Source: Hemiscyllium ocellatum
Lineage: Eukaryota
Reading direction: 5' to 3'
Length of the DNA: 64,000 bases
NCBI RefSeq assembly: GCF_020745735.1
Contig: NC_083417.1
Location: forward strand, 14,384,001 to 14,448,000
In this document: positions 1,418 to 63,103 of the stretch, piece after piece
Layout of the letters: each line of letters opens with the position of its first letter
Numbering within the stretch: position 1 is the stretch's first letter
Notes under the pieces: generated by a model
The model's input: the letters and a program-made list of their open reading frames with translations, nothing else
What the model was told of the DNA's origin: nothing
Databases searched by the model: none
Program-made: the position numbers and the translations under genes

Positions 1418-1741
1418 GGAGCAAAAACAGAAATCGCTGGAAAAGCTCAGCAGGTCTGACAGCATCCGTGGAGAGAAATCAGAGTTAACATTTCAGATCC
1501 AGTGACCCTTCCTCAGACTTCACTGGACTGGAAACATTAACACTGATTTCTCTCCACAGATGCTGCCAGACCTGCTGAGCTTTTCCAGCAATGTCTGTTT
1601 TTGCTCCTGATCCTGAATTTTTGTTTTATATACGAATGATTGTGGATAATATCTTTAAACTGAGCAGTATTATAGAGCTGCTGAGCTTTTCCAGCAATTT
1701 CTATTTCGATTTCCAGCATCTGCAATTCTTTCAGTTTATTT
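1418..1741 (+). mobile_element. PLE-terminus palindromic element (family 3) with inverted duplication of flank
   Basis: Long inverted repeat centred near 1515. Minus-strand HHR CTGAGGA-A-GGGTC-ACTG-GATCT-GAAA (1491-1516). Tail at 1678-1741. Candidate TSD ttcagga(t/c)ca at 1408-1417 and 1741-1750. Confidence 0.8.
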
Positions 1742-3019
1742 TCAGGACCATATTGATTCAAGTTGACTTTTCTTTACCATTTCAATTATGATCCCTGAAA
1801 CACTCTTACAGTGCAATTACAGTGTTAAGTTCTGACTGTTGCCAAACAGTAGCTAATAAAAAGTTCTTTGAGGCTCTTTAAAAATACTTCTTGGTTCTCA
1901 TTTGTAGATGGTTATGTGATGCAAATTTTTCATTGATTAAATAAAAGTGGAAATTTGTGCTACAAAAGCAAACATCAATCTGAACACAGATTCAGGGCTA
2001 CAAATAAGTAGCCCTGAAATTCTGATAAGGACTTGAAATGGTTGCTGGATTTATGGGTTAGGAATAAACTGGATAGTAAGTTGAGATCTGCAAAAGTCAA
2101 AATTTTAAAGTAAAATGCATTGCCCAATAATCCTGAATTTATTTACCTTCTTCTAAATTACATTTCCTCCACTTCAATATAAAAATATTAACATTTTATA
2201 ATTTTCTAAAACATCCGGTTTTGTGCATTACAGACCTTTTGACAACCAGGGGAACAAATAAAATGAACATACTAAGAAGCTGTAAATATCTGGAGACCAA
2301 AGTGGGGATCAGTTGCAATTATTATATTTGCTGATGCTTTTTGTTTGGAATTTAGTCTCCAAAAGCTATTGCAAGTGACTCCTTGCCCCTTGAAAATGTC
2401 AAGGGTTTCTTTCTAGACCTGTCTACAATGTACATTCAAATATTAATTTGCCTTTGCAAAATGCTGACTGAGATGCTGGTTATGTTTCAGTTTTTGTCAC
2501 ACTGATCTGCAGATGAATGGATTTGCGATCTGTTCTCTCTTTCTTTGGTTTGTCCTTCCGCGAGAGGAACCCTTTTAGTTTATTTTTGGAAGAAGCAAAA
2601 GAAATTGAAAATCACCATCTCATCTGCTAAACAGTCAGTCTGGCTCCTACTGCAACGTAGCAACAACACAACTCCTTACGAAACGTGACCCATTGCCACT
2701 CAGTCTGAATACCAGCATAATGATGTAAGAACAGAATCACTACCAAGGCTTTCATGGGCATGCTGGTAGTACAAAATGCTTAAAAGTCTAATACAGTGCT
2801 TTAAAAACAATGACAAATTCCATATTCCTATTCATCTGATGTTGTCTCTGACTAAGCTGCAGGCAAGTTTGGGTTAGTGACTGCTGGGCGTGAACGATGG
2901 AAAGATGGCTTGTGGAATTCTGTGTAGCTGCAGCAATAACTTCAAGACTATTTCCTAGATCTGCCCTCATCATTCACTCTGCTTCTACACACTCAGATTG
3001 AGCCTAATTTAGTTTACCT

Positions 3020-3090
3020 GACTAGCTGTGCTTTTCCAGCGCCACATTTTTTGACTCTGATCTCCAGCGCCTGCAGTCCTCATTTTCTCT
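3020..3090 (+). mobile_element. Single PLE 3'-tail fragment (family 1)
   Basis: gctgtgcttttccagcgccacattttttgactctgatctccagcgcctgcagtcctcattttctc matches the tail at 6706-6770. Confidence 0.7.
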
Positions 3091-3318
3091 GTACTTAATG
3101 CTTTGTTTAACATTAAATTTTAAACAAGTTTTGTTTAAAATTAGCAAGTTTGCAATAAAATAACGTCAGATGTACATTGTTATAATAAAATCAGCCCAGT
3201 ACACAATCTGGGATTCAGCAATAAGTCTGTGGAATACATAGCAACTAGAAGTACAATATAGCTGAAAATGTGTTGCTGGAAAAGCGCAGCAGGTCAGGCA
3301 GCATCCAAGGAGCAGGAG

Positions 3319-3355
3319 AATCAACGTTTCGGGCATGAGCCCTTCTTCAGGAATG
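3319..3355 (-). ncRNA. Minimal type-I hammerhead ribozyme motif (PLE left inverted terminus)
   Basis: Minus strand reads CTGAAGA-A-GGGC-TCAT-GCCC-GAAA-CGTT: conserved CUGANGA and GAAA boxes, 4-bp stem II, self-complementary ACGT at stem III. Confidence 0.75.
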
Positions 3356-3946
3356 AGAAGAGTGTGCCAAGCAGGCTAAGATAAAAGGTAGGGAGGAGGG
3401 AGTTGGGGGAGGGGTGTTGGGAATGCGATAGGTGGAAGGAGGTTAAGGTGAGGGTGATAGGCCGGAGAGGGGGTGGGGTCGGAGAGGTCAGGGAGAAAAT
3501 TGCAGGTTAAGAAGGTGGTGCTGAGACAAGGTGGGGGGGAGGGGAAAATGATGTGTGTGGAGGTGCAGGTGAATTTGTGACGGATATGGAAGGATCGCTT
3601 GGGGCCTTGGAGGGAAATGAGGGGGGTTGTTTTGCATTTCTTGTGGTTGCAGGAGAAGGTGCGGTGAGTGGAGGTTGGGTTGGTGAGGGGTGTGGACCTG
3701 ACGAGGGAGTCATGGAGGGTGTGGTCTTTCCGGAACGCTGATAGGGGAGGGGAGGGAAATTTATCCTTGGTGGTGGGGTCTGTCTGGAGGTGGTGGAAAT
3801 GACGAAAGATGATATGGAGGTTGGTGGGGTGGTAGGTGAGGACCAATGGGGGTAAGGGGAGGTTAGGCGTGGGTGCGGGGACGGAGATTGGGGCAGGGGT
3901 GGGGTTAGGTGTACAAATAGGGATCGCGTGGGCATGGGGTTAGGTG

Positions 3947-6300
3947 CCTAACCCCGCCCCCACGTCGATCCCCGTTCGCACACCTAGCCCACCCCTACGC
4001 CGAACCCAACCCCCTCCCCGATCTCCGTTCCTGCCCCAATTCCCGCCTCCACACCTAACCCCGCTCCCACTCCCAGATCCAGCCCCACACCAGGTCCTAG
4101 CTACCAGCCCTACCGTGTTTTCACCATCCCTCCAGAACTACCCCTCTCTGAGGATGAAAGATCAGTCCTTGGTAGAGGCCTCACCTTCATTCCCCTACGC
4201 TCTCGGATTAACGAGTTCAACACGCGGCGAGATATCGAACAATTCTTCTGCTGCCTTCGCCTCCGCGCCTACTTCTTCAACCAGGATTCTCGCCACCCAC
4301 TGACGACCCCTTCTCCCACCTCCAACACACCCCATCCACCTGGACGCCCCGTGCTGGCCTCTTACCTGTCCTCGATCTCTTCATAGCCAACTGCCGCTGT
4401 GAAATTAACAGCCTCAACCTCTCCACCCCTCTCACCCACTCCAACGTCTCTCCCTCGGAACGTGCAGCCCTCCACTCCCTCCGTTCCAACCTCAACCTCA
4501 CTATCAAACCGGCAGACAAGGGAGGCGCAGTAGTAATTTTGCGCACTGACCTTTACACTGCTGAGGCTAAACGCCAACTCGCGGACACCCACTCCTACTG
4601 CCCCCTTGACCATGACTCCACCTCCCATCACCAAACCATCATCTCCCAGACCATCCATAACCTCATCATCTCAGGGGATCTCCCATCCACCGCTTCCAAC
4701 CTCATAGTCCCACAACCCCGGACTGCCAGTTTCTACTACCTGCCCAAAATCCACAAACCTGACTGCCCCGGCTGACCCATTGTCTCAGCCTGGTCCTGCC
4801 CCACCAAACTCATCTCTGCATACCTCGACACGGTCCTATTCCTCCTAAGTCCAAGAACCCCCCGCCTATGTTCGGGACACCACCCGTGCCCTCCACCTCC
4901 TCCATGATTTTTGCTTGCCCGGTCCCCAATGCCTTATCTTCACCATGGACATCCAGTCCCTGTACACCTCCCTCCCCCATTACGAAGGACTCAAAGCCCT
5001 CCACTTCTTCCTTTCCCGCCGTACCAACCAGTACCCTCGCACTGACACCCTCCTTTGACTGACTGAACTGGTCCTCACTCTGAACAACTTCTCTTTCCAA
5101 TCCTCCCACTTCCTCCAAACCAAAGGAGTAGCCATGGGCACCCGCATGGGCCCCAGCTATGCCTGCCTCTTCGTAGGATATGTGGAACAGTCCATCTTCC
5201 GCGGCTACACTGGCATCACCCCCCACCTTTTCCTCCGCTACACCAATGACTGTATTGGCGCTCCCTCGTGCTCCCACGAGGAGGTTGAACAGTTCATCCA
5301 CTTTACCAACACCTTCCACCCCTACCTCAAATTTACCTGGACCGTCTCAGACTCCTCCCTCCCCTTCCTAGACCTCTCCATTTCTATCTCAGGCGACTGA
5401 ATCAACACGGACATTTACTATAAACTGACCGACTCCCACAGCTACCTAGACTACACCTCCTCCCACCCTGCTCCCTGTAAAAACGCCATCCCATATTCCC
5501 AATTCCTTCGTCTCTGCCGCATCTGCTCCCAGGAGGACCAATTCCAATACCGAACCACCCAGATGGCCTCCTTCTTCAAAGACCGCAATTTCCCCCCAGA
5601 TGTGATTGACGATGCTCTCCACCGCATCTCCTCCACTTCCCGCTCCTCTGCCCTTGAGCCCCACCCCTCCAATCGCCACCAGGACAGAACCCCACTGGTC
5701 CTCACCTACCACTCACCAACCTCCATATACATCATATCATCCGTCATCATTTCCGTCATCTCCAAACGGACCCCACCACCAGGGATATATTTCCCTCCCC
5801 TCCCCTCTCAGTGTTCCAAAAAGACCACTCCCTTTGTGACTCCCTTGTCAGGTCCACACCTCCCACCAACCCAACCTCTACTCCCGGCACCTTCCCCTGC
5901 AACCGCAAGAAATGCAAAACTTACGCACACACCTCCCCCCTTACTTCCCTCCAAGGCCCCAAGGGATCCTTCCATATCCGCCACAAATTCACCTGCACCT
6001 CCACATACATCATTTACTGCATCCGCCGCACCCGATATAGCCTCCTCTAAATTGGGGAGACAGGCCGCCTACTTGCGGAACATTTCAGAGAACACCTCTG
6101 GGACACCTGGACCAACCAACCCAACCACCCCTTGGCTCAACACTTCAACTCCCCCTCTGACTCCACCAAGGACATGCAGGTCCTTGGACTCCTCCATCGC
6201 CAGACCATAGCAACACGACGGCTGGAGGAAGAGCACCTCATCTTCCGCCTGGGAACCCTCCAACCACAAGGGATGAACTCAGATTTCTCCAGTTTCCTCA
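3947..6300 (+). pseudogene. PLE ORF (reverse transcriptase + GIY-YIG endonuclease), disrupted by stops and frameshifts
   Basis: Across frames: IKPADKGGAVV (DKG at 4515), YYLPKIHKPDCPG, TMDIQSLYT, GVAMGTRMGPSYA, FLRYTND (YIDD decayed, 5239-5250), LPFLDLSI, Cys linker PCNRKKCKT, IIYCIR...IGETGR, AQHFNS, RLGTLQPQGMN. Confidence 0.92.
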
Positions 6301-6496
6301 TTTCCCCTCCCCCACCTTCTCTCAGTCCCAACCCTCGAACTCAGCACCACCTTCCTAACCTGCAATCTTCTTCCTGACCTCTCCGCCCCCACCCCCACTC
6401 CGGCCTATCACCCTCACCTTAACCTCCTTCCACCTATCGTATTTCCAACGTCCCTCCTCCCTACCTTTTATTTTAGCCTGCTTGGCACAGTCTCCT

Positions 6497-6533
6497 CATT
6501 CCTGAAGAAGGGCTCAAGCCCGAAATGTTGATT
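6497..6533 (+). ncRNA. Minimal hammerhead motif (PLE right terminus)
   Basis: CTGAAGA (6502-6508) A GGGC-TCAA-GCCC GAAA (6522-6525) TGTT; ACGT decayed to ATGT (CpG transition). Confidence 0.65.
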
Positions 6534-6574
6534 CCCCTGCTCCTTGGATGCTGCCTGACCTGCTGCGCTTTTCC

Positions 6575-6704
6575 GAGTAAAAAATGAGGTCTGCAGATGC
6601 TGGAGATCACAGCTGCAAATGTGTTGCTGGTCAAAGCACAGCAGGTTAGGTATTCCTGAGATGCTGCCTAACCTGCTGTGCTTTGACCAGCAACACATTT
6701 GCAG
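6575..6704 (-). mobile_element. PLE-terminus palindromic mini-element nested in the PLE 3' end
   Basis: Arms agctgcaaatgtgttgctggtcaaagcacagcaggttagg / cctaacctgctgtgctttgaccagcaacacatttgcagct, 36-nt tail on the left, perfect 15-bp TSD ctgctgcgcttttcc (6560-6574, 6705-6719). Confidence 0.85.
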
Positions 6705-6910
6705 CTGCTGCGCTTTTCCAGCAACACATTTTCAGCTCTGATCTCCAGCATCTGCAAACCTCACTTTCTCCTAGAAGTACAATATAGTCTAGCAGCAACA
6801 ATTTTGTAAAGTTCCTAGACATCCTTTACGTGCATTGAATGTTTACAAAGGACTTCACGTCCTCTAACCTCACACCTGGTATTAAAGGTCTCGACAATAT
6901 TTGCATGTCT

Positions 6911-7298
6911 CTGATTGAGACATACAAGATTATGAAAGGATTGGATACTCTGGCAGCAGGAAACATGTTTTTGCTGATGGGTGCGTGCCGAACCAGAGGA
7001 CACAGCTTAAAAATACGGGGTAGACCATTTAGGACAGAGATGAGGAGAAACTTCTTCACCCAGAGAGTGGTGGCTGGGTGGAATGCTCTGCCCCATAGGG
7101 CAGTGGAGGCCCAGTCTCTGGATTCATTTAAGAAAGAGTTGGATAGAGCTCTCAAAGATAGTGGAATCAAGGGTTATGGAGATAAGGCAGGAAGAGGATA
7201 CTAATTAGGAATGACCAGCCATGATCATATTGAATGGCGGTGCAGGCTCGAAGGGCTGAATAGCCTACTCCTGCACCTATTGTCTATTGTCTATTGTC
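6911..7298 (+). mobile_element. CR1 LINE 3' end
   Basis: LIETYKIMKGLD...RTRGHSLKIRG...RRNFFTQRVVAGWNALP; ends in (ctattgt)n tail. Confidence 0.9.
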
Positions 7299-9709: not shown

Positions 9710-10710
9710 AAAGGAAGACTTACGCTTACATGACATTGTTCACTACCTCAGGTCATTTCCAAAGTGCTTAATAGCCAATTAAGTACATCTGAAGAGTAGC
9801 CAATGCTGTAATTTGGAAAGCACAGAAGTCAGTTTGCATGTAGAAAGTTCCCATTCGCAGCAATGGACTAAATGACCACTGTTGGTTTCAGATGTTGGCT
9901 GAGGGATTAAAGATGGTGAGGGCACCTTGGACATTTCCCTGCTCTTCTTCAAACAGTAATAGTAAGTAGGCTATCTGGTACATTTGCTTTTATTGGTACC
10001 TGCAATGAATATAGGAGTCACGAGGGCATGTTACAACTGTACAGGATATTAGTTAGGCCATTTTTGAAATACTGCATTCACTTCTGGTCTCCCTGCAACT
10101 TAAAAAGATTCAGGAGAAGACTTATAAGGATGTTATGAGGGTTGGAGAGTTTGAGCTATAGGGTGGGGCTGAATAAGCTGAGGCTATTTTCCCTGGAGTA
10201 TCGGAGGCAGAGGGGTGATCTTATTGAAATCTACAAAATCATGAGGGCCATAATAGGGTGAATAGTCGAGGTCTTTTCTCCAGGGTAGGGGAGTCCAAAG
10301 CTAGAGGGCATAGGTTTCAGGCAGAGATGGGGAAAGATTTACAAAGGACTTAAGGGGCAACTTTTTTGTGCAGAGGGTGGTGGCTATATGGAACAAGGTG
10401 ACAGAGGAAATGGTGGGGGCTGGTACAAACACAACATTTAAAAGGCAACTGATATGTTTATATCAATAGTAAGGGTTAAGAGGGATATGGACCAAATACT
10501 GGCAATTAGGACTGGATTAATATGGGACATCTGGTCAGCATGGACAAGTTGAACCGAAGGATCGGTTTGCATGCTAAATAACTCTATGACTCTATAAATA
10601 GTATCCATAGGATCTTTGAGAGTGCAGGCAGAGGCCTTGGTTAAATGATTATCTGAAAAGTAATCCCTGTTTACTGAAAATATCGAGGTAGTGCCACATG
10701 CAACAGAGGA
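9710..10710 (-). mobile_element. Deu-domain SINE (SacSINE1-like) split by a CR1 insertion
   Basis: gatgttggctgagggat...ccctgctcttcttcaaa | ...ccataggatcttt...gaggccttggttaaa is the reverse of the Deu core. Confidence 0.6.
9966..10595 (+). mobile_element. CR1 (HER1-like) LINE 3' fragment
   Basis: Typical ORF2 C-terminus and 3' UTR, ending actctatgactctat. Confidence 0.88.
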
Positions 10711-14654: not shown

Positions 14655-14772
14655 GCTAGAAGGTGCAGCCCTCCAAAAGTCTGTGATTGCAAATAAACCT
14701 GCTGGACCATAACCTGGTGTTGTGAAATTTCTGACCTTCTTCACCCCAATCCAATGCTGGCACCTCCACATC
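14655..14772 (+). mobile_element. Single-arm PLE terminus (family 2)
   Basis: caaataaacctgctggaccataacctggtgttgtg...caccccaatccaatgctggcacctccacatca matches the right arms at 32575-32655 and 63020-63103. Confidence 0.7.
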
Positions 14773-15378
14773 ACGTTCAATGTTGGCATCCAACACATGC
14801 CAATCTTTCTGACGACCCTCATGGTACATCTATGATGGACATACAGGCTGCTTCTGCACTTCAGTGCTATATGTCAGGCTGCATCAGCAACTGGAATGGT
14901 CATGCTTCAACAAGGGCACTATGCACTCAGGTGTGTTGGACCCAGCTCAAGGACTGGACCTGGCTACTTCCCACTTCTCATTTGCTGTCATAGTTCACAG
15001 CCACTCTGAGGTGATCCCAGAACATCCCTGCCTTGTCTTGCCTTGCCTTTTTGCATTTTAGCCACACAGCCAGAAATACCTGGCTCATAGTACTGCTGAC
15101 CTGCCTTCTGATTAGCACAGCTGCAAAGCCAGGAAGCTTTTACTAAATATCAGGACTCTTCAGACAAATCTAGAGGGATAGCCTAAATAAAGGGGTCCTG
15201 GGCAGTAAGTCAAAGGAAGTCTTCGCTATCAGTTCAGGTCCTGCTTGAGGCGCTAAGATGAGAATCCTCACCTCATATGGTGGGAGGTTTGGTATATTAG
15301 GTGGCCCAGCACCCACCTTGAGTCTTTTTAACCTATGATGGGATGTTTTCCTCGTGGAACGATAATGGTGGAACCTCC

Positions 15379-15853: not shown

Positions 15854-16070
15854 GGGGAAAGTGAGGATTGCAGATGCTGGAGATAAGACTCAAGATTAGA
15901 GTGGTGCTGGAAAAGCACAGCAGGTCAGGCAGCATCCGAGGAGCAGGAAAATCGTCGTTTCAGGCAAGAGCCCTTCATTAGGAATGAAGGGCTCCTGCCC
16001 GAAACGATTTTCCTGCTCCTAGGATGCTGCCTGACCTGCTGTGCTTTTCCAGCACCACTTTAATCTTGAC
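15854..16070 (-). mobile_element. PLE-terminus palindromic mini-element (family 1)
   Basis: Inverted arms meet at cccttcattaggaatgaaggg (HHR core). 35-nt tail on the left. TSD ttaaag(c/t)ttaaaga at 15840-15853 and 16071-16084. Confidence 0.88.
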
Positions 16071-16894: not shown

Positions 16895-17175
16895 CATTCC
16901 AATGTCAGACTGAGAAACTGCTGCACTATCAGAGGTGTTATATGTTTGTATAAATCATACAGGTGCAGTGTTTCAGAGGAGATGTTAAACAAAGACTCTG
17001 CCTGCCCTCTGAGGTGGTTGTAAAACATCTCATGGCACTATTTTGAAGAAGAACCTGGGAGTTGCCATTTATTCTTCATTCAACATCACTAAAAAAACTG
17101 ATTATCTAGTCAATGATATTTTTCTGTTTGTGGGAGTTTGTGGTGTGCAAATTAGATATCAATTTTTACATTACA
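16895..17175 (+). mobile_element. Deu-domain SINE
   Basis: gctgcactatcagaggtg...gagatgttaaac...ctgccctctgaggtggttgtaaaacatctcatggcactattttgaagaaga. Confidence 0.75.
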
Positions 17176-17177
17176 AA

Positions 17178-18234
17178 ATCATATCCCTCTAAACCCTTCC
17201 TATTCATGTATCTATCCAGATGCCTTTTAAATGTTGCAATTGGACCAGCTTCCACCACTTCTTCTGGCAGCTCATTTCATTCACCATCCTCTGCGTGAAA
17301 AAGTTGTCTCTTAGGTCCCTTTTAAATTGCTATCCTCTCACCTTAAACCTATGCCGTCCAGTTTTGGATGCCCTTACCCTGGAGAAAATACCTTGATTAT
17401 TCACCCTCTCTATGGCGCTCATGATTTTATCAACTTCTATAAGGTCACCCCTCAGCCTCCGACACTCCCAGGAAACAGCCCCAGCCTATTTAGCCTCACC
17501 CTATAGCACAAATCCTCCAACTCTGGAAACATCCTTGTAAATCTTTTCTGAACCCTTTCAAGTTTCTAAACATCTTTCCTATAGCGGGGAGACCAGAACT
17601 GAATGCAGCATTCCAAAAATGGCCTAACCAATATCCTTTTCAGCTGCAACATGATCTGTCAATACCGATACTCAATGCACTGAACAAGAAAAGCAAGCTG
17701 ACCAAAACACCACCTTCACTCTCCTATCTACCTGCGACTCCACTTTCAAGGAACTATGAACCTGCACTACGAGGTCTCATTGTTCAGAAACACTCCCTGG
17801 GACCTTACCAGTAAGGGTATAAGTCCTGCTCTGATTTGCCTTTCCAAAATCCAGCACCTCACACTTACCTAAATTAAACTCCATCTACCATTCCTTGGCC
17901 CTTTGGCTCATCTGATCAAGATCCCATTATACTCTGAGGTAACCTTCTTTGCTGTCCATTACACCACTAATTTTGGTGTCATCTGCAAACTTACTAACCA
18001 CACCTTTTTTCACATCCAAATCATTTATGTAAATGACAAAAACTAGTAGACCCAGCACTGATCCTTGTGGCACACCACTGGTCACAGGCCTCTAGTCTGC
18101 AAAGCAACCCTCCATCATAATCCTCTGTCTCCAACCTTCGAGCCAGTTCTGTATCCAAATGGCTAGATCTCCTTGTACTCCATGTGATGTAACCTTACAA
18201 ATCAGTCTCCTATGCGGAACTTTGTCGAGCGCCT
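17178..18234 (-). mobile_element. CR1 LINE RT fragment
   Basis: Near-identical organisation to 33580-34740 ([18 protein letters not shown] on the minus strand). Confidence 0.9.
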
Positions 18235-19439
18235 TACAGTAGTGCTAACAACTGAGTCACTGTGCTGCCCAAATGACTACACTTGGCACTATGGGGCCAC
18301 CAAAAGATACTATATACATGAATGTCTTTCTTTCTTCTTGACGCTGTAATGCTGAAAAACAGTACAATAAACAAATCAGCTTAATAATGGTACCAGCTCT
18401 CTAAATAATCGTTAAATTGGAGATCTGAGCAGCCACAGCCTGGGCCACAAGATGCCACAATAAATTTATTCAGAAGGAATGCAGCATTACATCTGTTACA
18501 GTAGAGTAAGTATACAACTTCTGCTCCTGTGAAAATAATTTGAAGGCATGTAACATCATATCCTCTTTTTCCATCCCCTCCCTTCCCCTCACCTTACCAA
18601 GGTCACTCATGGTTAAGTGCTATTTGGTCCTTCGAGGAATTGTAATTGAAAATTATGAAAAGTCAATAAAAAGCAACCCTTTAAATAACTTTCTATTTTT
18701 ACCCAGACATATTTACTTCACTGGCAAATCTATACTTTGATTCTTTAGAAGGATGTGAATGTTTTATTACAAAGGCTGGGGTTCTGTAATCCTGTTAACA
18801 ATATGCTCTGGACAGCCTTAAGTCCATTGTATTAAAGAAAAGGCTGCATATTTGGACCTATCTTTTGCACCAACCTACTATAGTACTGGAATTGATATAC
18901 ACTAAATCCCAAGGCAAATGAGCACATAAAGTATAGACGTGGGCATTTGTCTTGACCATATCTGCCCTTTCATGGGATTCAATCAGATATAGATATTGAG
19001 ATCACTCTACACTGCCTGAAAATATCTTAACTCTGATCTGGAACAAAGAATGGGTAGTATTACATTCATAGAAATCTTGAAGAAATAGCATAAAAAGTAA
19101 AGAAAAATGGAGAAAATGCCACAATATTTTAAATAATAAATAATTAGCAATGACAAGCTCTCTTTAGCATCTTACTCATAGATTAGCTAAAATTTTATAA
19201 ATAACTTATCTTTACCCCTACAACACCTCCATGATCACTCACACATCCGTTTGAACCCCCTAAAGTGGAGAAGATAAAGATAATCTCTGATCCTCATATT
19301 AAACTGTTACAAGGCACACTTTAGCAAAAGAATATTTTAATAATGCAGAAAGGCTTGTCTTGTTTTGTCTCATCTTCCAAGGTAAGCAGAAAAATAATTA
19401 GAAGTTAGCCCGGATAGTAAATCCATGTACAAAATATCT

Positions 19440-19567
19440 CATGAAGGGTCATTGGACTCAAAAACGTTAACTCTGTTTATCTCTCTACAGATGCTGCTAG
19501 ACCTACTGTATTTCTCCAGCACACTCAGGTTTTGCTTCAGATTTCCAGTATCTACAGCTCTCGAGTT
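19440..19567 (+). mobile_element. Single-arm PLE terminus (family 3) with TSD
   Basis: Starts inside the HHR (atgaagggtcattggactcaaaaacgttaact). TSD tacaaaata(t/c)ct at 19428-19439 and 19568-19579. Confidence 0.75.
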
Positions 19568-27584: not shown

Positions 27585-27685
27585 TCAATGGGGCGCAGAT
27601 GCTGGAAATACAAACAAAAAGCACTGGAAATACTCAATAGATCAGGCAGTAACTGTGTAGAGAGACAGAGCTAACGTTTCAAGAT
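27585..27685 (-). mobile_element. Degraded single-arm PLE terminus (family 3-like)
   Basis: gcagatgctggaaat...gagagacagagctaacgtttc. Confidence 0.55.
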
Positions 27686-28777: not shown

Positions 28778-28799
28778 TTCTTTTACAGAATTCTTTTAC

Positions 28800-29320
28800 A
28801 GATATTGGCATTTCTGACTGGGCCAGCTTTTATTGTTCATCAGTAATTGCCCAGAGGTTAAGAATCATCACATGTAGACCTGGAGAAAGTGTGGACTGCT
28901 GGGGATCAGAGTCAAAAAGTGTGGCACTGGAAAAGCATAGGAAGTCAGGCAACATCCGAGGAGCAGGAGAATTGACATTTTGGACATAAGCCCTTCATCC
29001 CTGATTCTCCTGCTCCTCAGATGCTGCCTGACCTGCTGAGCTTTTCCTGTGCCACATCTTTCATTACACGTAGACAAGACCAGGTAAGTATGACAGATTT
29101 CATTCCCTAAAGGACATCAGTAAACAAGATTGTTTTTTTTCAATAATCAACAATGGCTACATAGTTGCCACTAAAATAGTTTTTATAAAAAAATTCAGAT
29201 TGTTATTCAATTTAAGTTTCACTATGGGCTGTAGTGGGATTTGAACCCTTGTACCAGGACATTGACATTGAGTTCTGGATCAGAAGTCCCGTGATACTAT
29301 CAGTACATCATTGCCTCTCA
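28800..29320 (-). mobile_element. Second tRNA-derived SINE family ('SINE-B'), interrupted by a PLE hairpin
   Basis: Matches the reverse of 51220-51695 (accaggtaag...gatttcattccctaaaggac; gggatttgaaccc; ttctggat). Confidence 0.65.
28880..29060 (-). mobile_element. PLE-terminus palindromic mini-element (family 1) nested in a SINE
   Basis: Inverted arms with junction at cccttcatcc|ctgattctcc. TSD tcat(c/t)aca(t/c)gtagac at 28865-28879 and 29061-29075. Confidence 0.8.
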
Positions 29321-32507: not shown

Positions 32508-32655
32508 AGAAAAATCACACAACAGCAGGTTTCAGTCCAACAGGTTTATTTGAAAGTACAAGCTTGTACTTTTAGATAAACTCTTGGACTATAACCTGGT
32601 GTTGTGTGATTTTTAACTTTGTCTACCCCAGTCCACCGCCAGCAACTCCACATCA
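32508..32655 (+). mobile_element. PLE-terminus palindromic mini-element (family 2)
   Basis: Centre aaagtaca-AGCT-tgtacttt (32561-32564). Tail on the right. TSD tttctgg(a/g)tgtca at 32495-32507 and 32656-32668. Confidence 0.85.
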
Positions 32656-33579: not shown

Positions 33580-34740
33580 TAGAGTCAGAAAGTCATAGAG
33601 ATGTACAGCATGGAAACAGATCCTTCGGTCCAACCCATCCATGCCGACCAGATATCCCAACCCAATCTAGTCCCACCTGTCAGCACCCAGCCCAGATCCC
33701 TCCAAACCCTTTCTATTCATATACCCATCCAAATGCCTCTTAAATGTTGCAATTCTACCAGCCTCCACCACACCCTCTGGCAGCTCATTCCATACACGTA
33801 CCATCCTCTGCGTGAAAAAGTTGCCCCTTAGGTCTCTTTTATATCTTTCCCCTCTCATCCTAAACCTATACCCTCTAGTTCTGGACTCGCCAACCCCAGG
33901 GAAAAGACTTTGCCTATTTATCCTATCCATGCCTTCATAATTTTGTAAACCTCTATAAGGTCACCCTTCAGCCTCCGACACTCCGGGGAAAACAGCCCCA
34001 GCCTGTTCAGCCTCTCCCTGTAGCTCAGATCATTCAACCCTGGCAACATCCTTGTAGATCTTTTCTGAACCCTTTCAAGTTTCACAACATCTTTCCGATA
34101 GGAAGGAGAACAGAATTGCACGCAATATTCCAACAGTGGCCTAACCAATGTCCTGTACAGCACAACATGACCTCCCAACTCCTGTACTCAATACTCTGAC
34201 CAATGAAGGAAGGCATACCAAATGCATTCTTCACTATCCTATTTACCTGCGACTCCACTTTCAAGGAGCTATGAACCTGCACTCCAAGGTCTCTTTGTTC
34301 AGCAACACTCCCTAGGACCTTACCATTAAGTGTATAAGTCCTGCTAAGATATGCTTTCCCAGAATGCAACACCTCGCATTTATCTGAATTAAACTCCATC
34401 TGCCACTTCTCAGCCCATTGGTCCATCTAGTCAAGATCCTCTTGTAATCTGAGGTAACCCTTTTCGCTGTCCACTAAACCTCCAATTTTGGTGTCATCTG
34501 CAAACTTACTAACTGTACCTCTTACGCTCGCATCCAAATCATTTATGTAAATGACAAAAAGTAGAGGACCCAGCACCGATCCTTGTGGCACTCCACTGGT
34601 CACAGGCCTCCAGTCTGAAAAACAACCCTCCACCACCACCCTCTGTCTTCTACGTTTGAGCCAGTTCTGTATTCAAATGGCTAGTTCTCCCTGTATTCCA
34701 TGAGATCTAACCTTGTTAATCAGTCTCCCATGGGGAACCT
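33580..34740 (-). mobile_element. CR1 (HER1-like) LINE 3' 1.2 kb, relatively young
   Basis: ORFs: [36 protein letters not shown]; WAEKWQMEFN; RPLLEYCVQF; FFTQRMVRVWNELP. Confidence 0.95.
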
Positions 34741-38854: not shown

Positions 38855-39237
38855 AGCCTTGGCTCAAAAGGTCAAGGGTTTAAGCTCCAGATCGCAGAGT
38901 TAAGCAAGAAATCTAGTTTAGTTCAGTGCAGCATTGAGGGGATGCCAAACTGTCAAATATGCTGCAATGTTAAGTCTGTCTTCCCAGGAGATGTAAAAGA
39001 TCCAGTGGAATGATTTGAAAAGAAGACAGCTCCTACTGTTGGCATCCTGGCCAATATTTATCCCTCAACCAACATCTCAAAACCAATTCCTATTTGCTGC
39101 TTTTGTGATCTTGCTGTTCGCAAGTTGGCTGCTGCGTTTCTCTATTACAGTGGTGATTACTGTGCAACAGTATTCCATTGATTGGAAAGCATTTTTCGAC
39201 ATACCGAAGTTAAGAGAAGTGTCAAAGAAATGCAAAC
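38855..39237 (+). mobile_element. Deu-domain SINE
   Basis: gatgtaaaagatcc...tcctggccaatatttatccctcaaccaacatc. Confidence 0.75.
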
Positions 39238-39345
39238 ATACAGAATGGTGGAAAAAACCTCGCAGATGTGGCGGCATCTGTGGAGAGAGAATCAGAACAA
39301 ATGTCTGAGTCAAGTATGACTCTTTCTCCGAAGAGTCTTTCTCTC
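39235..39345 (-). mobile_element. Degraded PLE terminus (family 3-like)
   Basis: ggcggcatctgtggagagagaatcaga...gagtcaagtatgactctttc. Confidence 0.45.
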
Positions 39346-40700: not shown

Positions 40701-41477
40701 ACAAAAAAGCACATTTTTATTAAACTAACAGGCAAATGATTTATAAAGAATCAAAAGGAAAGATTAGCTTTAATGGTGGTAATGCTTACTCTGAAGAGTA
40801 CCCCTCCCCAATTCCATTGTGCTGCAGATTAGAAGTCTAATATAATGAGTATTGGAAAAAGGTCTGAGATTACAACAATAGGCTCAACCAGTAGGGCTTA
40901 AAATTCAAAACCAATCTTTTCCTTTACGATTCTTACACAGAAGGCTGGATATGATTTTTTTTAAATAAAGGAAAAGTTAATAGGTACAGGCTGAATCCTG
41001 ATAAATGCATAACTAGTTTGGGCGGAAATGTTATGCTTGGATCAGGATTATTCTTGGATCATTGCAGACAAAAATAGCCAATTTGCAAACCTTTGTACCA
41101 CAGCCCATTTAATCATTCATTCAGTAAATTTGATCTGAATGAAGTTTTGATTTTTCTTCCGTCTCAATAAAGCCAACAGAAATACCTAAATATATATGGA
41201 TATAGTCACTAGAAAAAGTGACTTGGCTTAAATGTGCTGCTGTTGCATTGTAATTGAAAATATTTTATTCTAATAAGAAGATGAAACAAAACCCAAACTT
41301 GGGAATCCTTTATATTATAGGAATTTTGCAGAATGAATGCTTTGGAATGGATTCTGCACATAGGGCATAATACAATTGGCATTTTCTGCGTTATTTTATT
41401 CATAAAGGATAGTGCTGGGGGGAAATGGGATGCTTTCGGTTTTGGGTATCCCACAGTCAGCATCGAACATCCCCAGA

Positions 41478-41611
41478 TGCAAAAACAGAGACTGCTGCAG
41501 AAACTCAGCAGGTCTGGTAACACCTGTGGAGAGAAAGCAGGTCCAAGTTTGAGTTTTTCCAGGAAATCCTGTTTTGTTTCAGATTACCAGCATCCACAGT
41601 TCTTTATTTTT
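41478..41611 (+). mobile_element. PLE-terminus palindromic mini-element (family 3), degraded
   Basis: caaaaacagagactgctgcagaaactcagcagg ... tgagtttttccaggaaatcctgttttgtttcagattaccagcatccacag. Confidence 0.7.
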
Positions 41612-46885: not shown

Positions 46886-48349
46886 GCTGTGCCCCTTGCT
46901 GAGATATTTGTATCATCAATAGACTGAATGTTGGCTAACGTGGTGAGACTATATCAGAAAGGTGGTATGGAAAATCCTGGGAACTACAGACCAGTGAGCC
47001 TGACATCGGTGGTGGGCAAGTTGCTGAAGGGAATTCTGAAGGACAGGGCTTACATGTGTTTGGAAAGGCAAGGACTGATTAAGGAAGGTCAACATGGCTT
47101 CATGCGAAGGAAAGCATGTCTCATGAACTTGAGTTTTTTGAAGAAGTATCAAAGAGGATTGATGAGAGCAGAGCGGTGGACATGGTCTATATGGACTTCA
47201 GTAAGGTGTTCGACAAGGTTCCCCATGGGAGACTGGTTAGCAAGGTTAGATCTCATGGAATACAGGGAGAACTAGCCATTTGGATACAGAACTGGCTCGA
47301 AGGTAGAAGACAGACGGCAGTGGTGGAGGATTGTTTTTCAGACTGGAGGCCTGTGACCAGTGGAGTGCCGCAAGGATTGGTGCTGGGTCCACTACATTTC
47401 ATCCTTTATAAATGCTTTGGATATGAACATAGGAGGCATAGTTAATAAGTTTGCAGATGACACTAAAATTGGAGATGCAGTGGACAGCAAAGAAGGTTAT
47501 CTAAGAGTACAATGGGATCTTGATCAGATGGGCCAATGGGCTGAGGAGTGGCAGGTCTAGTTTAATTTATACAAATGCAAGGTGCTGCATTTTGGAAAGG
47601 CAAATCAGAGTAGGACTTATACACTTAATGGTAAAGTCCTGGGGAATGTTGCTGAACAAAGATTTTGGAGTGCAAGTTCATAATTCCTTGAAAGTGGAGT
47701 CGCAGGTAGATAGGATAGTGAAGAAGGCATTTGGTATGCTTTCCTTTATTTGTCAGAACATTGAGTGTAGGAGCTGGGAGGTCATTTTGTGGCTGTACAG
47801 GACATTGGTTAGGCCACCTTTGGAATATTGTATGCAATTCTGGTCTCTTTCCTATCAGAAATATGTTGTGAAACTTGAAAGGGCTCAGAAAAGATTTACA
47901 AGGATGTTGCCAGGGTTGGAGGATTTGAACTACAGGAGACGCTGAATAGGCTGGGGCTGTTTTCCCTGGAGCATCGAAAGCTGAAGGGTGACCTTACAGA
48001 AATTTATAAAATCAAAAGGGGCATGGATTGGATAAATAGACAAGGTCTTTTCCCTGGGGTGGGGGAATCCAGAACTAGAGGGCATCGGTTGAGGGTGAGA
48101 GGGGAGAGATTTAAAAGGGACCTAAGGGGCAAATTTTCCACACAAAGGGTGGTGCATGTATGGAATGAGCTACCAGAGGAAATGATGGAGGCAGTACAAT
48201 TACAAAATTTAACAGCATCTGGATGGGTATATGAATAGTAAGGTTTAGAGAGATATGGGCCAAATGCTGGCAAATGGGACTAGTTTAGGTTACGATATGG
48301 ACAAGTTGGACCGAAGGGTCTTTTTCCATGCTGTGCAATCTATGACTCT
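46886..48349 (+). mobile_element. CR1 (HER1-like) LINE 3' 1.46 kb
   Basis: [53 protein letters not shown]. Confidence 0.95.
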
Positions 48350-48422
48350 ATAACTGTCCATTATTACATTTCAGTTCATGGGAGTTTCCTGTTATATTAG
48401 CTGTTAATACAACTGTCAAGCC

Positions 48423-49934: not shown

Positions 49935-50435
49935 TAGAGTCATAGAGATGTACAGCATGGAAACAGACCCTTCAGTCCAACACGTCCTTGCCGACCAGAT
50001 ATCCCTACCCAATCTAGTCCCACTTGCCAGCACCTGGCCCATATCCTTCCAAACCCTTCCTATTCATATACCCATCCAAATGTCTCTTAAATGTTGCAAT
50101 TGTACCAGCCCCCATCACTTCCTCTGGCAGCTCATTCCATACACGTGCCACTCTCTGCATGAAAAAGTTGCCCCTTAGGTCTCTTTTATATCTTTCCCCT
50201 CTCACCCTAAACCTATGCCCTCTAGTTCTGGACTCCCCGACCCTAGGGAAAAGACTTTGTCTATTTATCCTATCCATGCCCCTCATAGTTTTGTAAACCT
50301 CTATAAGGTCTCCCCTCAGCCTCTGGTGCTCCAGGGAAAAAGCCCAAGCCTGCTCAGCCTCTCCCAATAGCTCAAATCCTCCAACCCTGGTAACATCCTT
50401 GTAAATCTTTTCTGAACCCTTTCAAGTTTCACAAC
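49935..50435 (-). mobile_element. CR1 3' fragment
   Basis: LRGDLIEVYK..SRTRGHRFRVRG..FFMQRVARVWNELP. Confidence 0.92.
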
Positions 50436-50954
50436 ACCAACATCTGATGGAAGTTCATCAAAGTTCAGAATAAGTAGACCTTCCTCAGCCAAAGTCAAAA
50501 TGGTGGACTATAGATATGAGTATTGTCACTTTATTATTGAAGGCTCTCAGTAATATCTTTGCAGAAAGTTTGATATCATCCATAGCAGCAGGATTATTCA
50601 GGTTACAGGCTGCTTCATAAGTACTTGCATCATCAGAGTTGATCCTGTGATGTATGAGTGGAGAGAATCTTTCGACTTCTCCAGCAACTTGATCATTCTA
50701 CATTCAGGCAGTCAAACAATGGTGCAAGATCTCAGTGTTCTGGACAAGTCCAACTAAGTCTGTCATAAGAGAATACAGATTCTGTGGCAGGTGGTCTTAA
50801 AGGAAGTGTATTTAGATTTTTAAATTTAAAACAATTAAACCGCTGGTTTAATGTTGATCTGACAGAGTCCGGGCAAATACTTTTTGAGTCAGAGTTTTAT
50901 TTCCACTCACATACCACACACCCCAACCCATGCTGAATATTTGTTCCCCGCATA

Positions 50955-54067: not shown

Positions 54068-54069
<2 letters not shown>

Positions 54070-54497: not shown

Positions 54498-54670
54498 TTA
54501 ATTAGAGGCAAAAAAAACTGCAGATGCTAGAATCCAAAGTAGACAGGCAGGAGGCTGGAAGAACACAGCAAGCCAGGCAGCATCAGGAGGTGGAGAGGTC
54601 AACGTTTCTTCAGGAGGCGTTCTCCTCCTGATGCTGCCTGGCTTGTTGTGTTCTTCCGGACTCCTGCTTC
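54498..54670 (-). mobile_element. PLE-terminus palindromic mini-element (family 4)
   Basis: Arms gcaggaggctggaagaacacagcaagccaggcagcatcaggagg / cctcctgatgctgcctggcttgttgtgttcttccggactcctgc. TSD ccaa(c/t)ttcacaac at 54485-54497 and 54671-54683. Confidence 0.82.
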
Positions 54671-55020
54671 CCAATTTCACAACAGCGGTCTGACTGCTGA
54701 GGCTGCTTTTTGATTTAATACTTTTGAAATGTGCAGTGAAAGAACCTTAAAATGAAGGCATTCTCTCTCTCTCTGGACTACAAGCAGCTGCTCATTCAAA
54801 GATGGAGGGACCTCCTGTTCACACTTCAAAGGATACTCCACAACACCATCATTCATAATGATGAGCGCATTCTCTGGCTATTCATTGGCTATTCAGGGAA
54901 CATTGCTTTCGGGTGACTGTATCTCACAGAGTGAGGGATTGTGACCCCACTTGATGCATCCTGTGGGTTTCTGACTGATCCAACTATATGCTGTCCTCCC
55001 AGTTTGTATTTCCTAATATG

Positions 55021-55218
55021 AAATCAGAAATCGCTGGAGAAACTCAATGGGTCTGGCAGCATCTTGGAGAGAAAGCAGAGTCAACGTGCAGTGTCACCAG
55101 ACCCAAAAAGATAATTTTGTTCTCTCTTCACAAATATTGGCAGACCTGGTGAACTTTTCCAGCAATTCCTGTTTGTGTTTCTGATTTCCAGCATCCCCAG
55201 TTCTTTCGGTTTTTATTA
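55021..55218 (+). mobile_element. PLE-terminus palindromic mini-element (family 3), copy 1 of an inverted duplication
   Basis: cagaaatcgctggagaaactc...ggcagcatc / ggcagacctggtgaacttttccagcaattcctg plus tail. Confidence 0.75.
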
Positions 55219-55470
55219 TTAACTTGTTGCTGGATATATCCAAGTGAACTCCTGTCCTGCCTTAACCTCCTCTCCAGCCGGTTTAATAATTAATTCTTCG
55301 GTGCATCAGAATCGCAGAAAATAGTAAGAAACACAACAGGCAAGGAAGCCAATAAGTACTCCCTGTGAAAGGCAAGGACGTGTAATATTACAGGCCATCG
55401 TCATGGTGAAAAGGGCAAGGGAGGAGGTTAAGGCAGGTCAAGAATTCACTTGGACATATCTGGCAACAAA

Positions 55471-55677
55471 TTAATAAAAATCAAAAGAACTGTGGATGCT
55501 GGAAATCAGAAACACAAACAGGAATTGCTGGAAAAGCTCACCAGGTCTGCCAGTATTTGTGAAGAGAGAAACAAAATTAAATTTTTGGGTCTGGTGACAC
55601 TGCACGCTGACTCTGCTTTCTCTCCAACATGCTGCCAGACTCATTGAATTTCTCCAGCAATTTCTGTTTTTGTGTCA
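55471..55677 (-). mobile_element. PLE-terminus palindromic mini-element (family 3), copy 2 of an inverted duplication
   Basis: Reverse complement of 55021-55218, including the same idiosyncratic centre and flanks. Confidence 0.75.
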
Positions 55678-55959
55678 AAAAATACAAACTGGAAGGACAG
55701 CATATAGTTGGATCAGGCATTACACCCTGTATGAGGAATTCTATGGGCTATAATGAGAATGAATAAACAGTGATTAGTTACTTTTCAAAGCATCAGATGG
55801 ATTGGAACTATTCCAAAATCAGGATACGCATTGCTCTGTGCCTAGCAACCCTTTATACCAACTACCTCTCCTTTGTTATATCTCTGTCCAATGTTAACAT
55901 TTTCTCTTCCCAGAAAAAAAAATCACCTGGGATTGGAGGTGGTGGGAGAAGGAGTTGCA

Positions 55960-57250: not shown

Positions 57251-57394
57251 CAGTGATAAAGTTGCTGTACATTAGATCGCTTATTCCAAAGAAGAAATTG
57301 ATAACATTTTACAAATCTAAAAGGAAATATCTAAATGTAGAACCATAGGCAGTTTATAATTTTCTTCAGAATTCTAGGTGCCACCACAAATTTT

Positions 57395-57690
57395 AGACTG
57401 TTCCAAGGTGCTTTACAGGAGTCTGATCAGACACAAGTTTATGCAGGGCCACATAAAGAGATATTAGGTCAGGTGACCAAAAGCCTGAGTAAAAGATGTA
57501 GGCTTCAGGAAGGAAGATAAAGGAGGTGAGAGATGCAGTAAGGTTTAGGGAGGAGATTTCAGAGATTAAAGCCTAAGTAATTGAAGGCACAGCTGCTACT
57601 GATGGAAGAAAGTAAATCAGGCATGTGCAAGATGTCAGAATTGATAGAGTGCAGAGAACTAGGGGCATTGGAGTAGGTTAAAGAGTTGGA
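57395..57690 (-). mobile_element. L2-type LINE 3' end
   Basis: ccaaggtgctttacagga...agatattaggtcaggtgaccaaaagc...tttagggaggagatttcagag; a related copy lies at ~59110-59345. Confidence 0.55.
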
Positions 57691-59715: not shown

Positions 59716-59913
59716 GATCGCACAACAACAGGTTACAGTCCAACAGGTTTATTTGGAAGCATTAGCTTTTGAGGCACTGCCTCTTCATCAGGTCACCTGA
59801 TGAAAAGACAATGCCTCAAAAGCTAGTGCTTCCAAATAAACCTGTTGGACTATAACCTGGTGTGGTGTGATTTTTAACTATGCCCACCCCAGTCCAAAAC
59901 CGGTATCTCCAAA
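59716..59913 (+). mobile_element. PLE-terminus palindromic mini-element (family 2) with two back-to-back HHR motifs
   Basis: Centre ttcatcaggt-c-acctgatgaa (59794). Perfect 13-bp TSD tcttgttagtaat at 59703-59715 and 59914-59926. Confidence 0.9.
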
Positions 59914-61269: not shown

Positions 61270-61500
61270 TTGAACTATAGTTAATAGTTTTACTGCTGAA
61301 TGTGTGGCAGGAATGGTAGGCAGCCAAACTATGCACAGAAAGCTCCAACAAGTAGCAATTACTGTACATTTTAAATGTTGGTAGGGTAACAAACATTTGG
61401 AGGGGAAACTGTGGAGAACTCCATTGCTGTCCTGAGAATATTGCCAGAAGGTCTTTTCTATCCACCAGAGAGCAGGTAAGGCTCCAGTCACACCTGAAAG
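61270..61500 (-). mobile_element. Deu-domain SINE fragment
   Basis: gcagccaaactatgcacagaaagctcc...gtcttttctatccaccagagagcag. Confidence 0.5.
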
Positions 61501-61504
61501 ACAA

Positions 61505-62610
61505 ATAGAGTCACAGGGGTCGACAGCACAGTCAAAGGCCCTTTGACCCATTGTGTCCATGTTGGTCAAAAACAACCACCTAACTATTCTACATTCCAGC
61601 ATTTGGCCTACAGCCTTGGCATCACACATTAATGTGTCTTCAACATCCTGAAGGTTTCTGCCCCAACCACACTTAGGGCAGTGAGGTCCAGATTCCCATC
61701 CTCTGGGGAAAGGGTTTTTTTCCCACAGCTCTTCTATATCATCTGTCCTTTACATTCAATCTACACACTCTGGTCTTTGATTCCCTCCAACAAACAAAAA
61801 GGTTCCTTCCCGTCCATTCTTCTATGCTCCTCATAATTTTACACATTTCAATCATGTTCCTGCTCAATCGGCAGGTGGCTCAGTGGTTAGCACTGCTGCC
61901 TCACAGCACCAGGGCCCCAGGTTCAATTCCAGCCTCAGGTAACTGTCTGTGTGGAGTTTGCACATTCTCCCCATGTCTGTGTGGGTTTCCACAGGGTGCT
62001 CCGGTTTCCACCCACAATCCAAAGATGTGCAGGTCAGGGTGAATTGGCCATGCTAAATTATCCATAGTGTTAGGTGCATTAGTCACAGGGAAATGGGTCT
62101 GAGTGGGTTACTCTTCCGAGGGTCGGTGTGGACTGGTTGGGCCGAAGGACTTGTTTCCACACTGTAGGGAATCTAATCAATCTCCAATGCTCTGAGGAAA
62201 ATAAAACAATCTGTCCAATCACTCTTCACAACTGAAATCCTTCAGTTCCAGGCAACATCCTGGAAAATCTTCTCTGCAACCTCTCCAGGGCTGTCACATC
62301 TTTCTTATAATGCGGATTCCAGAACTGCACATAGTTCACTGGCTGTGGCATAACTGACATCTTATATTGTTCTCACATAACTCTTCTGCTCTGCACCTTG
62401 GCTAGTAAAGGCAAATAAACCATAGTCTTCTTAACCATTTTATCCTGTCCTGACACCCTAAGAGATCGTGATCTTTCACTCCAAGGTCCCTCTGATCCTC
62501 GGTCCTTTTCCTCATTGTGTATTCTCTTGCCTTGCTTGTCTTGCCCAAATGCGGTTGATGATTGAATTCCATTTGTTATTGATTAGCCCATCTGACCAGC
62601 CTGTCTATAA
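61505..62610 (-). mobile_element. Old CR1 fragment interrupted by an HE1 SINE
   Basis: ggcaacatcctggaaaatcttctctgcaacctctccagg...ccagaactgcacatag. Confidence 0.7.
61869..62177 (+). mobile_element. HE1-type V-SINE, full length
   Basis: ggtggctcagtggttagcactgctgcctcacagc...tttccacactgtagggaatctaatc. Confidence 0.9.
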
Positions 62611-62828
62611 GATGGTTGGGAGTGAGGATGGAGGTATGGGCAGGATAAAAATTTATTAACAGTCTAATCTTCCTCGGTGATATATTCCACAACCAGCACA
62701 GTGTTGCTGAGCTGCATTTTACTCAAACTGAAATGAGCTGGATGTTAAGTGCTAGTGAGAGTAATTCAGGGATGATGCTTTTACAGATTGGGTGTATTAA
62801 TCAAACTTTGTGTTGCTGTTAAGATAAA

Positions 62829-63103
62829 GATCTCATAACACCAGGTTATAATCCAACTGGTTTATTTAGAAGCACTAGCTTTTGGAGCTCTGCTCCTTCC
62901 ATCAGGTGGACGTGGAACGGGATCATAAGACACAGAATTTCTAGCAAAAATATTGTGTCTTATGATCCTATTCCACAACCACCTGATGAAGGAGCGGTGC
63001 TCCGAAAGCTAGAGCTTCCAAATAAACCTGTTGGATTATAACCTGGTGTTGTGTAATTTTTAACTTTGTCCACCCCAGTCCAACACCGGCACCTCCAAGT
63101 CAT
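62829..63103 (+). mobile_element. PLE-terminus palindromic mini-element (family 2)
   Basis: ~110-bp inverted arms around ~62940, tail on the right. No clear TSD. Confidence 0.85.
62979..63015 (+). ncRNA. Minimal type-I hammerhead ribozyme motif
   Basis: cac-CTGATGA (62983-62989)-A-GGAGC-GGT-GCTCC-GAAA (63004-63007)-GCTA: intact core, 5-bp stem II, palindromic AGCT. Confidence 0.78.

Follow-up and report, generated by a model that had tools for sequence, protein, structure and literature searches.

What are the short palindromic units that crowd a 64,000-nucleotide stretch of the Hemiscyllium ocellatum genome (NC_083417.1, positions 14,384,001 to 14,448,000; hereafter the window)? Their small size and inverted arms resemble MITEs (miniature inverted-repeat transposable elements). 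The original prediction, made from the letters of the window, held that they only look like MITEs, are mobilized by reverse transcriptase (RT), and are built from the termini of Penelope-like elements (PLEs), being either self-propagating ribozyme elements or stereotyped abortive PLE integrations. We find that the units are the last 50-200 bases of PLEs, truncated and joined head to head, and that they are not DNA transposons and do not form a new self-copying element. Each unit probably records one aborted integration of an endonuclease-positive (EN+) PLE of the Penelope/Poseidon type. The architecture is the known PLE insertion scar in its shortest form, a piece of biology that has already been described, and the novelty first claimed for it was overstated since the main features have been published for PLEs.

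Fold-back units and the one-tail rule

Arms were searched in the window with nhmmer using profile hidden Markov models built from the aligned arms of four families. We identified 30 arms, comprising 11 head-to-head pairs, two arms of a coding PLE at 3262-6770, and six single arms (Table 1). Both this search and an inverted-repeat search recovered all 11 fold-backs and five single arms that had been claimed; the profiles added one further arm (1676-1737). Close inverted repeats of at least 30 nt number 13 in the window, compared with a mean of 0.4 in first-order shuffles. All 11 fold-backs are real; however, only 10 are independent, as those at 55021 and 55471 are mirror images (89% identical) within one inverted duplication and count as one insertion. 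Even so, fold-backs are more common in the window than single arms (10 independent versus 6). Arm alignments resolved four sequence families, in line with the at least four expected: A, B, and D have a common core and a similar tail motif, and C is unrelated to them in sequence except for the ribozyme boxes.

To these we added one shark locus found through contigs that encode homologues of the PLE protein (L001, 20.7 kb, from Chiloscyllium punctatum), bringing the DNA examined to ~85 kb and the independent set to 12 fold-backs, 10 from the window and 2 from L001. Exactly one arm is tailed and the other tail-less in all 12, and likewise in the coding PLE, so that the predicted extra tail on one side only holds throughout. 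If the start site were chosen independently for each arm, the chance of this pattern would be at most 0.5^12. Tails measure ~36 nt in family A, ~30 nt in B, 42-45 nt in C, and 49 nt in D, for an overall range of 30-49 nt. The strict one-tail rule is possibly new, and the cases are few. We also observed that the partner arm is the nearest relative for 12 of the 24 arms, where ~3 would be expected, and that five fold-backs form near-perfect palindromes whose loops measure 0-8 nt.

Seven window units have both arms enclosed by target-site duplications (TSDs) of 13-19 bp, significant at P≤0.007 relative to random flanks: the coding PLE and the fold-backs at 6575, 15854, 28880, 32508, 54498, and 59716. 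TSDs also enclose both arms of the two L001 units.

Family A arms match the termini of a coding Penelope-like element

The coding element at 3262-6770 carries a broken frame for RT and GIY-YIG domains, interrupted by stops and frameshifts. At its left end lies an inverted arm that is a 589-nt copy of its own 3′ part, with self-BLAST pairing 3278-3525 to 6574-6340 and 3546-3851 to 6015-5690. This left arm stops at the inner terminus, and ~36 extra bases, the tail, follow on the right arm. Alignment of the family A arms to these termini, the tail on one arm, and the identical 17-mers on either side confirmed that the first family matches this element, which has the same asymmetry and a 17-bp TSD.

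None of the six stop-free open reading frame pieces of the window PLE matched Pfam, so its membership was established through full-length homologues. Searched without a profile against 1.8 billion proteins, one RT piece returned thousands of relatives, and the full-length relatives P0072, P0093, P0094, and P0140 contain RVT_1 followed by GIY-YIG in Pfam. Searches by tblastn with P0072 and P0093 covered 4117-6296 on the forward strand and 3837-3541 on the reverse strand, with P0072 being 52-54% identical to the window frame in the RT part. The closest proteins come from C. punctatum and Rhincodon typus. Judged by its sequence, the element is a 5′-truncated EN+ PLE. L001 contains a second coding copy with a family A terminus, together with two fold-backs of family C and either one or two single arms. 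Family A arms match the 3′ termini of RT plus GIY-YIG elements in both loci. Altogether, the domain pair of EN+ PLEs is present for family A only, and their inverted truncated copy is present in the 11 head-to-head pairs and in the 589-nt arm.

Three observations concern the coding element and its surroundings. Between its inverted arm and its frame lies a GC-rich, low-complexity segment (3872-4091) with a weak 41-nt inverted repeat and a proline-rich translation; its matches to plant microRNA (miRNA) models fall below threshold and are probably a compositional artefact. Directly to the right of the element, 6839-7204 holds a 121-aa open frame, which we take to resemble the C-terminal part of ORF2 of a long interspersed nuclear element. 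A 158-aa partial protein labeled as Proteus mirabilis (P0207, from a 474-bp contig) is 93% identical to the RT piece of the window PLE and almost certainly represents shark-type DNA contaminating a bacterial assembly.

Junctions differ between units but their ends cluster

We measured the inner ends of the arms relative to the predicted ribozyme cut site (position 0), on which scale the first ribozyme box starts at about -27 to -30 (Table 1). All 12 independent junctions differ. Contigs of the window's species and two relatives hold at least 470 further distinct junction types, mostly on 1-3 contigs each. No sign of transposition of the hairpin itself was seen. A junction at or near the hammerhead, which had been proposed as a shared trait, holds for about 8-9 of the 12 fold-backs, whereas the joins of 6575, of 41478, and of the 54498 right arm lie on its downstream side.

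Although the junctions are individual, the ends are not evenly spread. Among ~20 events, 8-9 fall within ~6 nt of the first base of CUGANGA, including two TSD-bounded single arms (19442 in the window and 17885 in L001), and 5-6 fall 0-8 nt upstream of the cut site, inside an ACGT/AGCT palindrome; evenly spread ends would place ~2 events in each cluster. Additionally, the range +8 to +25 contains many of the junctions seen in the species' own contigs. Clustering at the 5′ edge of the hammerhead and at the helix III palindrome is possibly new, again from few cases. The first cluster hints at a discrete RNA 5′ end. The second is better explained by joining through self-complementary microhomology, or by RT pausing at helix II, than by a self-cleaved RNA end at +1.

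The hammerhead as a passenger

Hammerheads were sought with a descriptor that requires the CUGANGA and GAAA boxes and at least 4 bp of helix II, allows an unpaired base, and for each match lists the G10.1-C11.1 pair, whether 15.2/16.2 is self-complementary with U-H after it, and the pairing of helix I. Both boxes and helix II are kept in four window arms (6502+, 62983+, 3323-, and 1487-). With two more in L001, these matches occupy homologous positions; shuffled sequences gave an expectation of 0.31. Helix II covaries between families (GGGC/GCCC, GGGTC/GACCC, GGAGC/GCTCC). The unpaired base 9/10.1, the G10.1-C11.1 pair, and the self-complementary 15.2/16.2 with U-H all occur at 62983-63011, 3323-3350, and L001 12372-12399, and the helix III part is decayed at 6502-6529.

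Helix I has at most 2 contiguous pairs, with 3-4 of 6 positions pairable, and thus falls short of the 4-5 bp of PLE minimal hammerheads. In minimum-energy folds by ViennaRNA, helix II is predicted in all four motifs folded, an intermolecular helix III in one of the four, and helix I in none. No Rfam hammerhead model matched the window at the gathering threshold or at E≤10, as expected for motifs without a helix III hairpin. Most arms have decayed through CpG loss or end before the motif. Because the motif lies ~65 nt from the inner terminus, where the inner start site falls, any arm longer than ~95 nt contains it; the association of arms with the ribozyme is positional, and the predicted hammerhead is a passenger.

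Several fold-backs match unrelated miRNA-precursor models below threshold, with E from 1e-4 to 1 (54547-54667, 59749-59838, 6598-6709, 1467-1559, and 62901-62987). They could be mis-annotated as miRNA genes and, if transcribed, could give hairpin RNAs. Units that resemble either MITEs or miRNA precursors are likely to be mislabeled by annotation pipelines.

Abundance and age of the insertions

We aligned public contigs from the window's species and from two relatives ~4% diverged to the window. The family A core reaches a summed k-mer depth of ~10^6 times single copy in all three species and the tail ~10^5 times, values that are not copy numbers. More than 1,000 contigs per run (1,376 in run X1) stop at the inner terminus and then continue into unrelated AT-rich sequence, and these are independent insertion sites. 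In both relatives, contigs run into the 15854 element from either flank, one relative contig spans the single arm at 19440, and relatives' contigs break inside the arm at 14655, so these three insertions are older than the split of the species. No empty orthologous sites were found in the contigs of the two relatives. Contig depth, including loose ends at 15948 and 15953, is not readable as a truncation profile because the reference copy departs from the family consensus at the hammerhead and breaks the alignments; the depth drop at the cut site of 15854 is likewise not meaningful owing to a 3-nt deletion in the right arm.

Alternative origins of the units

Could the segment from the hammerhead to the 3′ terminus (~130-150 nt) be an element in its own right, a non-autonomous unit resembling a short interspersed nuclear element (SINE) or a retrozyme and mobilized in trans by the PLE protein? 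Its RNA would have a defined 5′ end, and the fold-backs would comprise its full-length copies and those processed by the ribozyme. The excess of ends at CUGANGA keeps this idea alive, the second cluster of ends can be counted in its favor, and none of families B, C, and D yielded a coding parent in the DNA examined. The sample is small, however, and several arms extend beyond the hammerhead by 40-70 nt or more (62829, L001 3270, and the 589-nt PLE arm), many contig junctions lie downstream of the cut site, and the second cluster sits in the ACGT/AGCT palindrome rather than at +1, which favors microhomology joining. A plausible ribozyme is present in only four window arms, and Tandem Repeats Finder detected no tandem hammerhead arrays in the window. 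We consider this origin unlikely, while giving it more weight than any of the other alternatives. Another alternative, in which the whole hairpin is a self-copying transposing unit, is very improbable. In two samples of the window's species, one perfect-palindrome junction (15936/16023) does reach ~30 times single-copy depth, and in the two related species it is rarer or missing altogether; yet with ~10^5 or more arms, repeated self-complementary joining would yield tens of identical 31-mers without propagation. The uniqueness of the 12 independent junctions and the 1-3 contigs on which most other junction types occur, together with the scarcity of usable ribozymes and the absence of tandem units from the window, speak against the self-propagating ribozyme mini-retroelements of the original prediction.

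Inverted arms and small size are also what class II MITEs moved by a DNA transposase would display, but this origin has almost no chance of being correct. The TSDs are long and variable, a tail on one side makes the arms unequal, 5′-truncated single arms of the same sequences exist, the arms share homology with the 3′ end of an element that encodes RT, and no transposase was found. The view that the units are mobilized by RT and merely look like MITEs is thus upheld by the TSDs that bound them and by the origin of their arms in PLE 3′ termini. Alternatively, single arms may have been inserted first and later made palindromic at the DNA level by inverted duplication, through fold-back repair or template switching. 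Events of this type do occur, as the inverted duplication at 54972-55719 and the flank-including palindrome at 1348-1675 illustrate. However, TSDs enclose both arms in nine units, and random duplication is not expected to produce the one-tail rule or precise ends at the inner site, making later duplication a very improbable source of the units, if marginally less so than hairpin copying.

Aborted integration as the probable origin, and its weak points

Abortive PLE integration, the second option of the original prediction, fits the homology to PLE 3′ ends, the TSDs, and the unique junctions. The anatomy of the units, their TSDs, the one-tail rule, the uniqueness of the junctions, and the homology to a coding PLE can be read directly from the DNA, and we infer the order of enzymatic steps, which may be as follows. 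The RT/GIY-YIG protein would cut both target strands 13-19 bp apart. Reverse transcription would begin near the RNA 3′ end, the outer start site giving the tailed arm and the inner site ending the other, tail-less arm. Synthesis would halt after 40-200 nt, and the two antisense strands would be joined head to head. This joining may be at least partly DNA-templated, by snap-back or by a jump from one complementary DNA (cDNA) to the other via short self-complementary sequences. The tiny loops, the similarity of partner arms, and the palindrome at 1348-1675 suggest that one arm is partly copied from the DNA of the other. In that palindrome the arm copy continues into the flanking DNA of the arm it copies, which marks the template as DNA; copying would have overrun ~65 nt into the target and then switched to a second, tailed partial arm.

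Priming of snap-back by the antisense of helix I, with the hammerhead as loop, was considered for 28880, 55021, and L001 4174. It was rejected as the sole mechanism because the second arm of 28880 has the true +1 to +6 sequence and not that of the primer.

Several observations weigh against aborted integration as the source of every unit. The 85 kb examined yielded no coding parents for families B, C, and D. No TSDs were found for 1418, 41478, 55021, and 62829; around 1348-1737 the only candidate is a 7-mer repeated at about 1407-1413 and 1744-1750, which makes no clear TSD. The arms of 55021 are poor relatives of each other and those of 41478 barely overlap, so that each of these units could be two adjacent insertions, and 41478, which has no TSD, may be a composite of two events. 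The loop or longer inner arm belongs to the tailed arm in four cases and to the tail-less arm in three, so no single order of snap-back fits all units. Finally, the two RT start sites showed no strand preference in vitro (Frangieh et al., PMC11167929), and the strict one-tail rule is not predicted by that result alone.

A more specific reading of aborted integration can be offered only tentatively and is less likely than not. The fold-backs may be fossils of the second half of PLE integration, recording use of the outer start site on one strand, a second arm that ends at the inner site and was finished by DNA copying (snap-back or a cDNA-to-cDNA jump), and two end hot spots, at the 5′ edge of the hammerhead and at the helix III palindrome beside the cut site, that mark RNA ends or pauses in vivo. 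If so, a defined short RNA species running from the hammerhead to the terminus would exist, possibly with ribozyme processing in vivo.

Relation to known systems

The insertion structures of canonical EN+ PLEs (Penelope/Poseidon) have reportedly been set out by Evgen'ev and Arkhipova in 2005 and by Arkhipova in 2006. The elements described here share with them an RT with a C-terminal GIY-YIG, 5′ truncation, an inverted copy, a tail at one end, a hammerhead in the terminal repeat, and variable TSDs. Strong 5′ truncation, an adjacent inverted 5′-truncated copy, a 30-40-bp tail often at one end only, and hammerheads in the pseudo-long terminal repeats are published PLE features, and the mechanism behind the inverted structure has been termed undefined (Craig et al. 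2021, PMC8557442). In contrast to the canonical elements, both arms are only 40-200 nt here with nothing coding left, fold-backs exceed single arms in number within the window, and the tails of families C and D reach 42-49 nt.

The protein of PAc, the Poseidon element of Anolis carolinensis, cuts and extends both target strands in vitro, starts reverse transcription at two internal sites separated by the length of a tail, and can insert without ribozyme cleavage (Frangieh et al. 2024, PMC11167929). As in PAc, the tail lies between the two start sites. The hammerhead cut site of PAc is ~85-90 nt upstream of its start sites; the corresponding distances here are similar, at ~60-70 nt for the inner site and 95-115 nt for the outer. 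The fixed pairing of a tailed with a tail-less arm differs from the absence of strand preference in vitro.

The motifs resemble PLE minimal hammerheads in their CUGANGA and GAAA boxes, the unpaired base before helix II, the G10.1-C11.1 pair, a self-complementary CG or GC at 15.2/16.2, and the absence of a helix III hairpin. They differ in a very weak helix I (2 contiguous pairs) and in that most copies are decayed or cut before the ribozyme. Paired minimal hammerheads on opposite strands, 100-700 bp apart, were reported in 2014, when dispersed copies, many of them single and truncated, were ascribed to truncated PLEs (Cervera & De la Pena, PMC4209133). Animal non-LTR (long terminal repeat) retrozymes are also non-coding, hammerhead-bearing, and derived from or mobilized by PLEs; however, they form head-to-tail tandem units with circular RNA (Cervera & De la Pena 2020, PMC7229834; Li et al. 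2026 preprint, 10.64898/2026.07.22.740005), whereas here the pairs are head to head, scattered, and flanked by TSDs.

A genome that carries tens of thousands of these stubs serves as a natural record of how PLE integrations turned out, and tail side, loop size, and junction position tabulated genome-wide could test models of how PLE inverted repeats form. Twin-priming offers a comparison: in L1, the second target strand primes a second cDNA, which leaves the 5′ part inverted. Second-strand priming and an inverted part are common to both systems, but the two parts of an L1 insertion are consecutive stretches of one RNA, whereas both arms here cover the same 3′-terminal sequence.

Individual units and other repeats

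Table 1. Arms, fold-backs, and associated features of the window and of C. punctatum locus L001. Fold-backs are named by family and approximate start; inner ends are given relative to the predicted ribozyme cut site.
Feature	Positions	Strand	Inner ends (left; right)	Tailed arm	TSD	Remarks
Coding PLE, decayed, 5′-truncated	3262-6770	+			17 bp, exact (3245-3261 and 6771-6787)	inverted arm 3262-3851; body ~4117-6296; 3′ region with hammerhead motif and tail
A 6575 fold-back	6575-6704		+25; +12	left	15 bp (6560-6574 and 6705-6719)	nested in PLE 3′ end; arms 100% identical over 41 nt; ends leave no hammerhead inside
A 15854 fold-back	15854-16070		-31; -33	left	14-19 bp	near-perfect palindrome; junction 4-6 nt upstream of CUGANGA box
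A 28880 fold-back	28880-29060		-25; 0	left	15 bp, 2 mismatches	left arm spans hammerhead; right arm begins at cut site
B 1418 complex	1348-1737		-30; -19	right (on second partial arm)		tail-less left arm 1414-1516; right arm 1520-1615; flank copy 1618-1675; tailed partial arm 1676-1737
B 41478 head-to-head pair	41476-41610		-12; +49	right		long left arm; very short right arm
B 55021 fold-back	55021-55212		-4; -26	right		mirrored at about 55484-55680
Inverted duplication	54972-55719					~300 bp per arm (54972-55272 and 55719-55421); 148-nt spacer; self-BLAST 89% over 302 nt
C 32508 fold-back	32508-32655		-5; -5	right	13 bp	perfect palindrome centered on helix III AGCT
C 59716 fold-back	59716-59913		-30; -31	right	13 bp	1-nt loop; junction 2-3 nt upstream of CUGAUGA
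C 62829 fold-back	62821-63103		-63; -70	right		7-nt loop; arms extend 63-70 nt upstream of cut site; best-preserved minimal hammerhead motif in right arm (62983-63011)
D 54498 fold-back	54498-54667		-5 or further; +11	left	16 bp	49-nt tail
L001 3270 fold-back	L001, at about 3270		-42; -50	left		
L001 4174 fold-back	L001, at about 4174		-31; -2	left		
Single A arm	3017-3089	+		tailed		found by nhmmer
Single C arm	14659-14773	+		tailed		found by nhmmer
Single B arm	19442-19563	+		tailed		TSD-bounded 5′ end at first base of CUGANGA box
Single B arm	27585-27685	-		tailed		found by nhmmer
Single B arm, degenerate	39231-39324	-				nhmmer E = 1e-7

Two of the units have a structure beyond the simple fold-back. 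In the family B complex at 1348-1737, the segment 1618-1675 is an inverted copy of the left-arm flank 1348-1405, so that the palindrome runs ~65 nt past the PLE arms; the flank copies are 76% identical and the arms 90%. Each arm of the inverted duplication at 54972-55719 holds a whole family B fold-back plus unrelated flanking DNA, and no TSD was found for the duplication. It could be a larger fold-back event, part of another element with long inverted ends, or a repair product.

The window contains another abundant repeat family, unrelated to the PLE arms, at 17018-18326, with related copies at ~10006-10594, 33585-34552, 47670-48355, and 49935-50436. In each of the three species, its contig depths sum to 10^5 to 10^6 times single copy.

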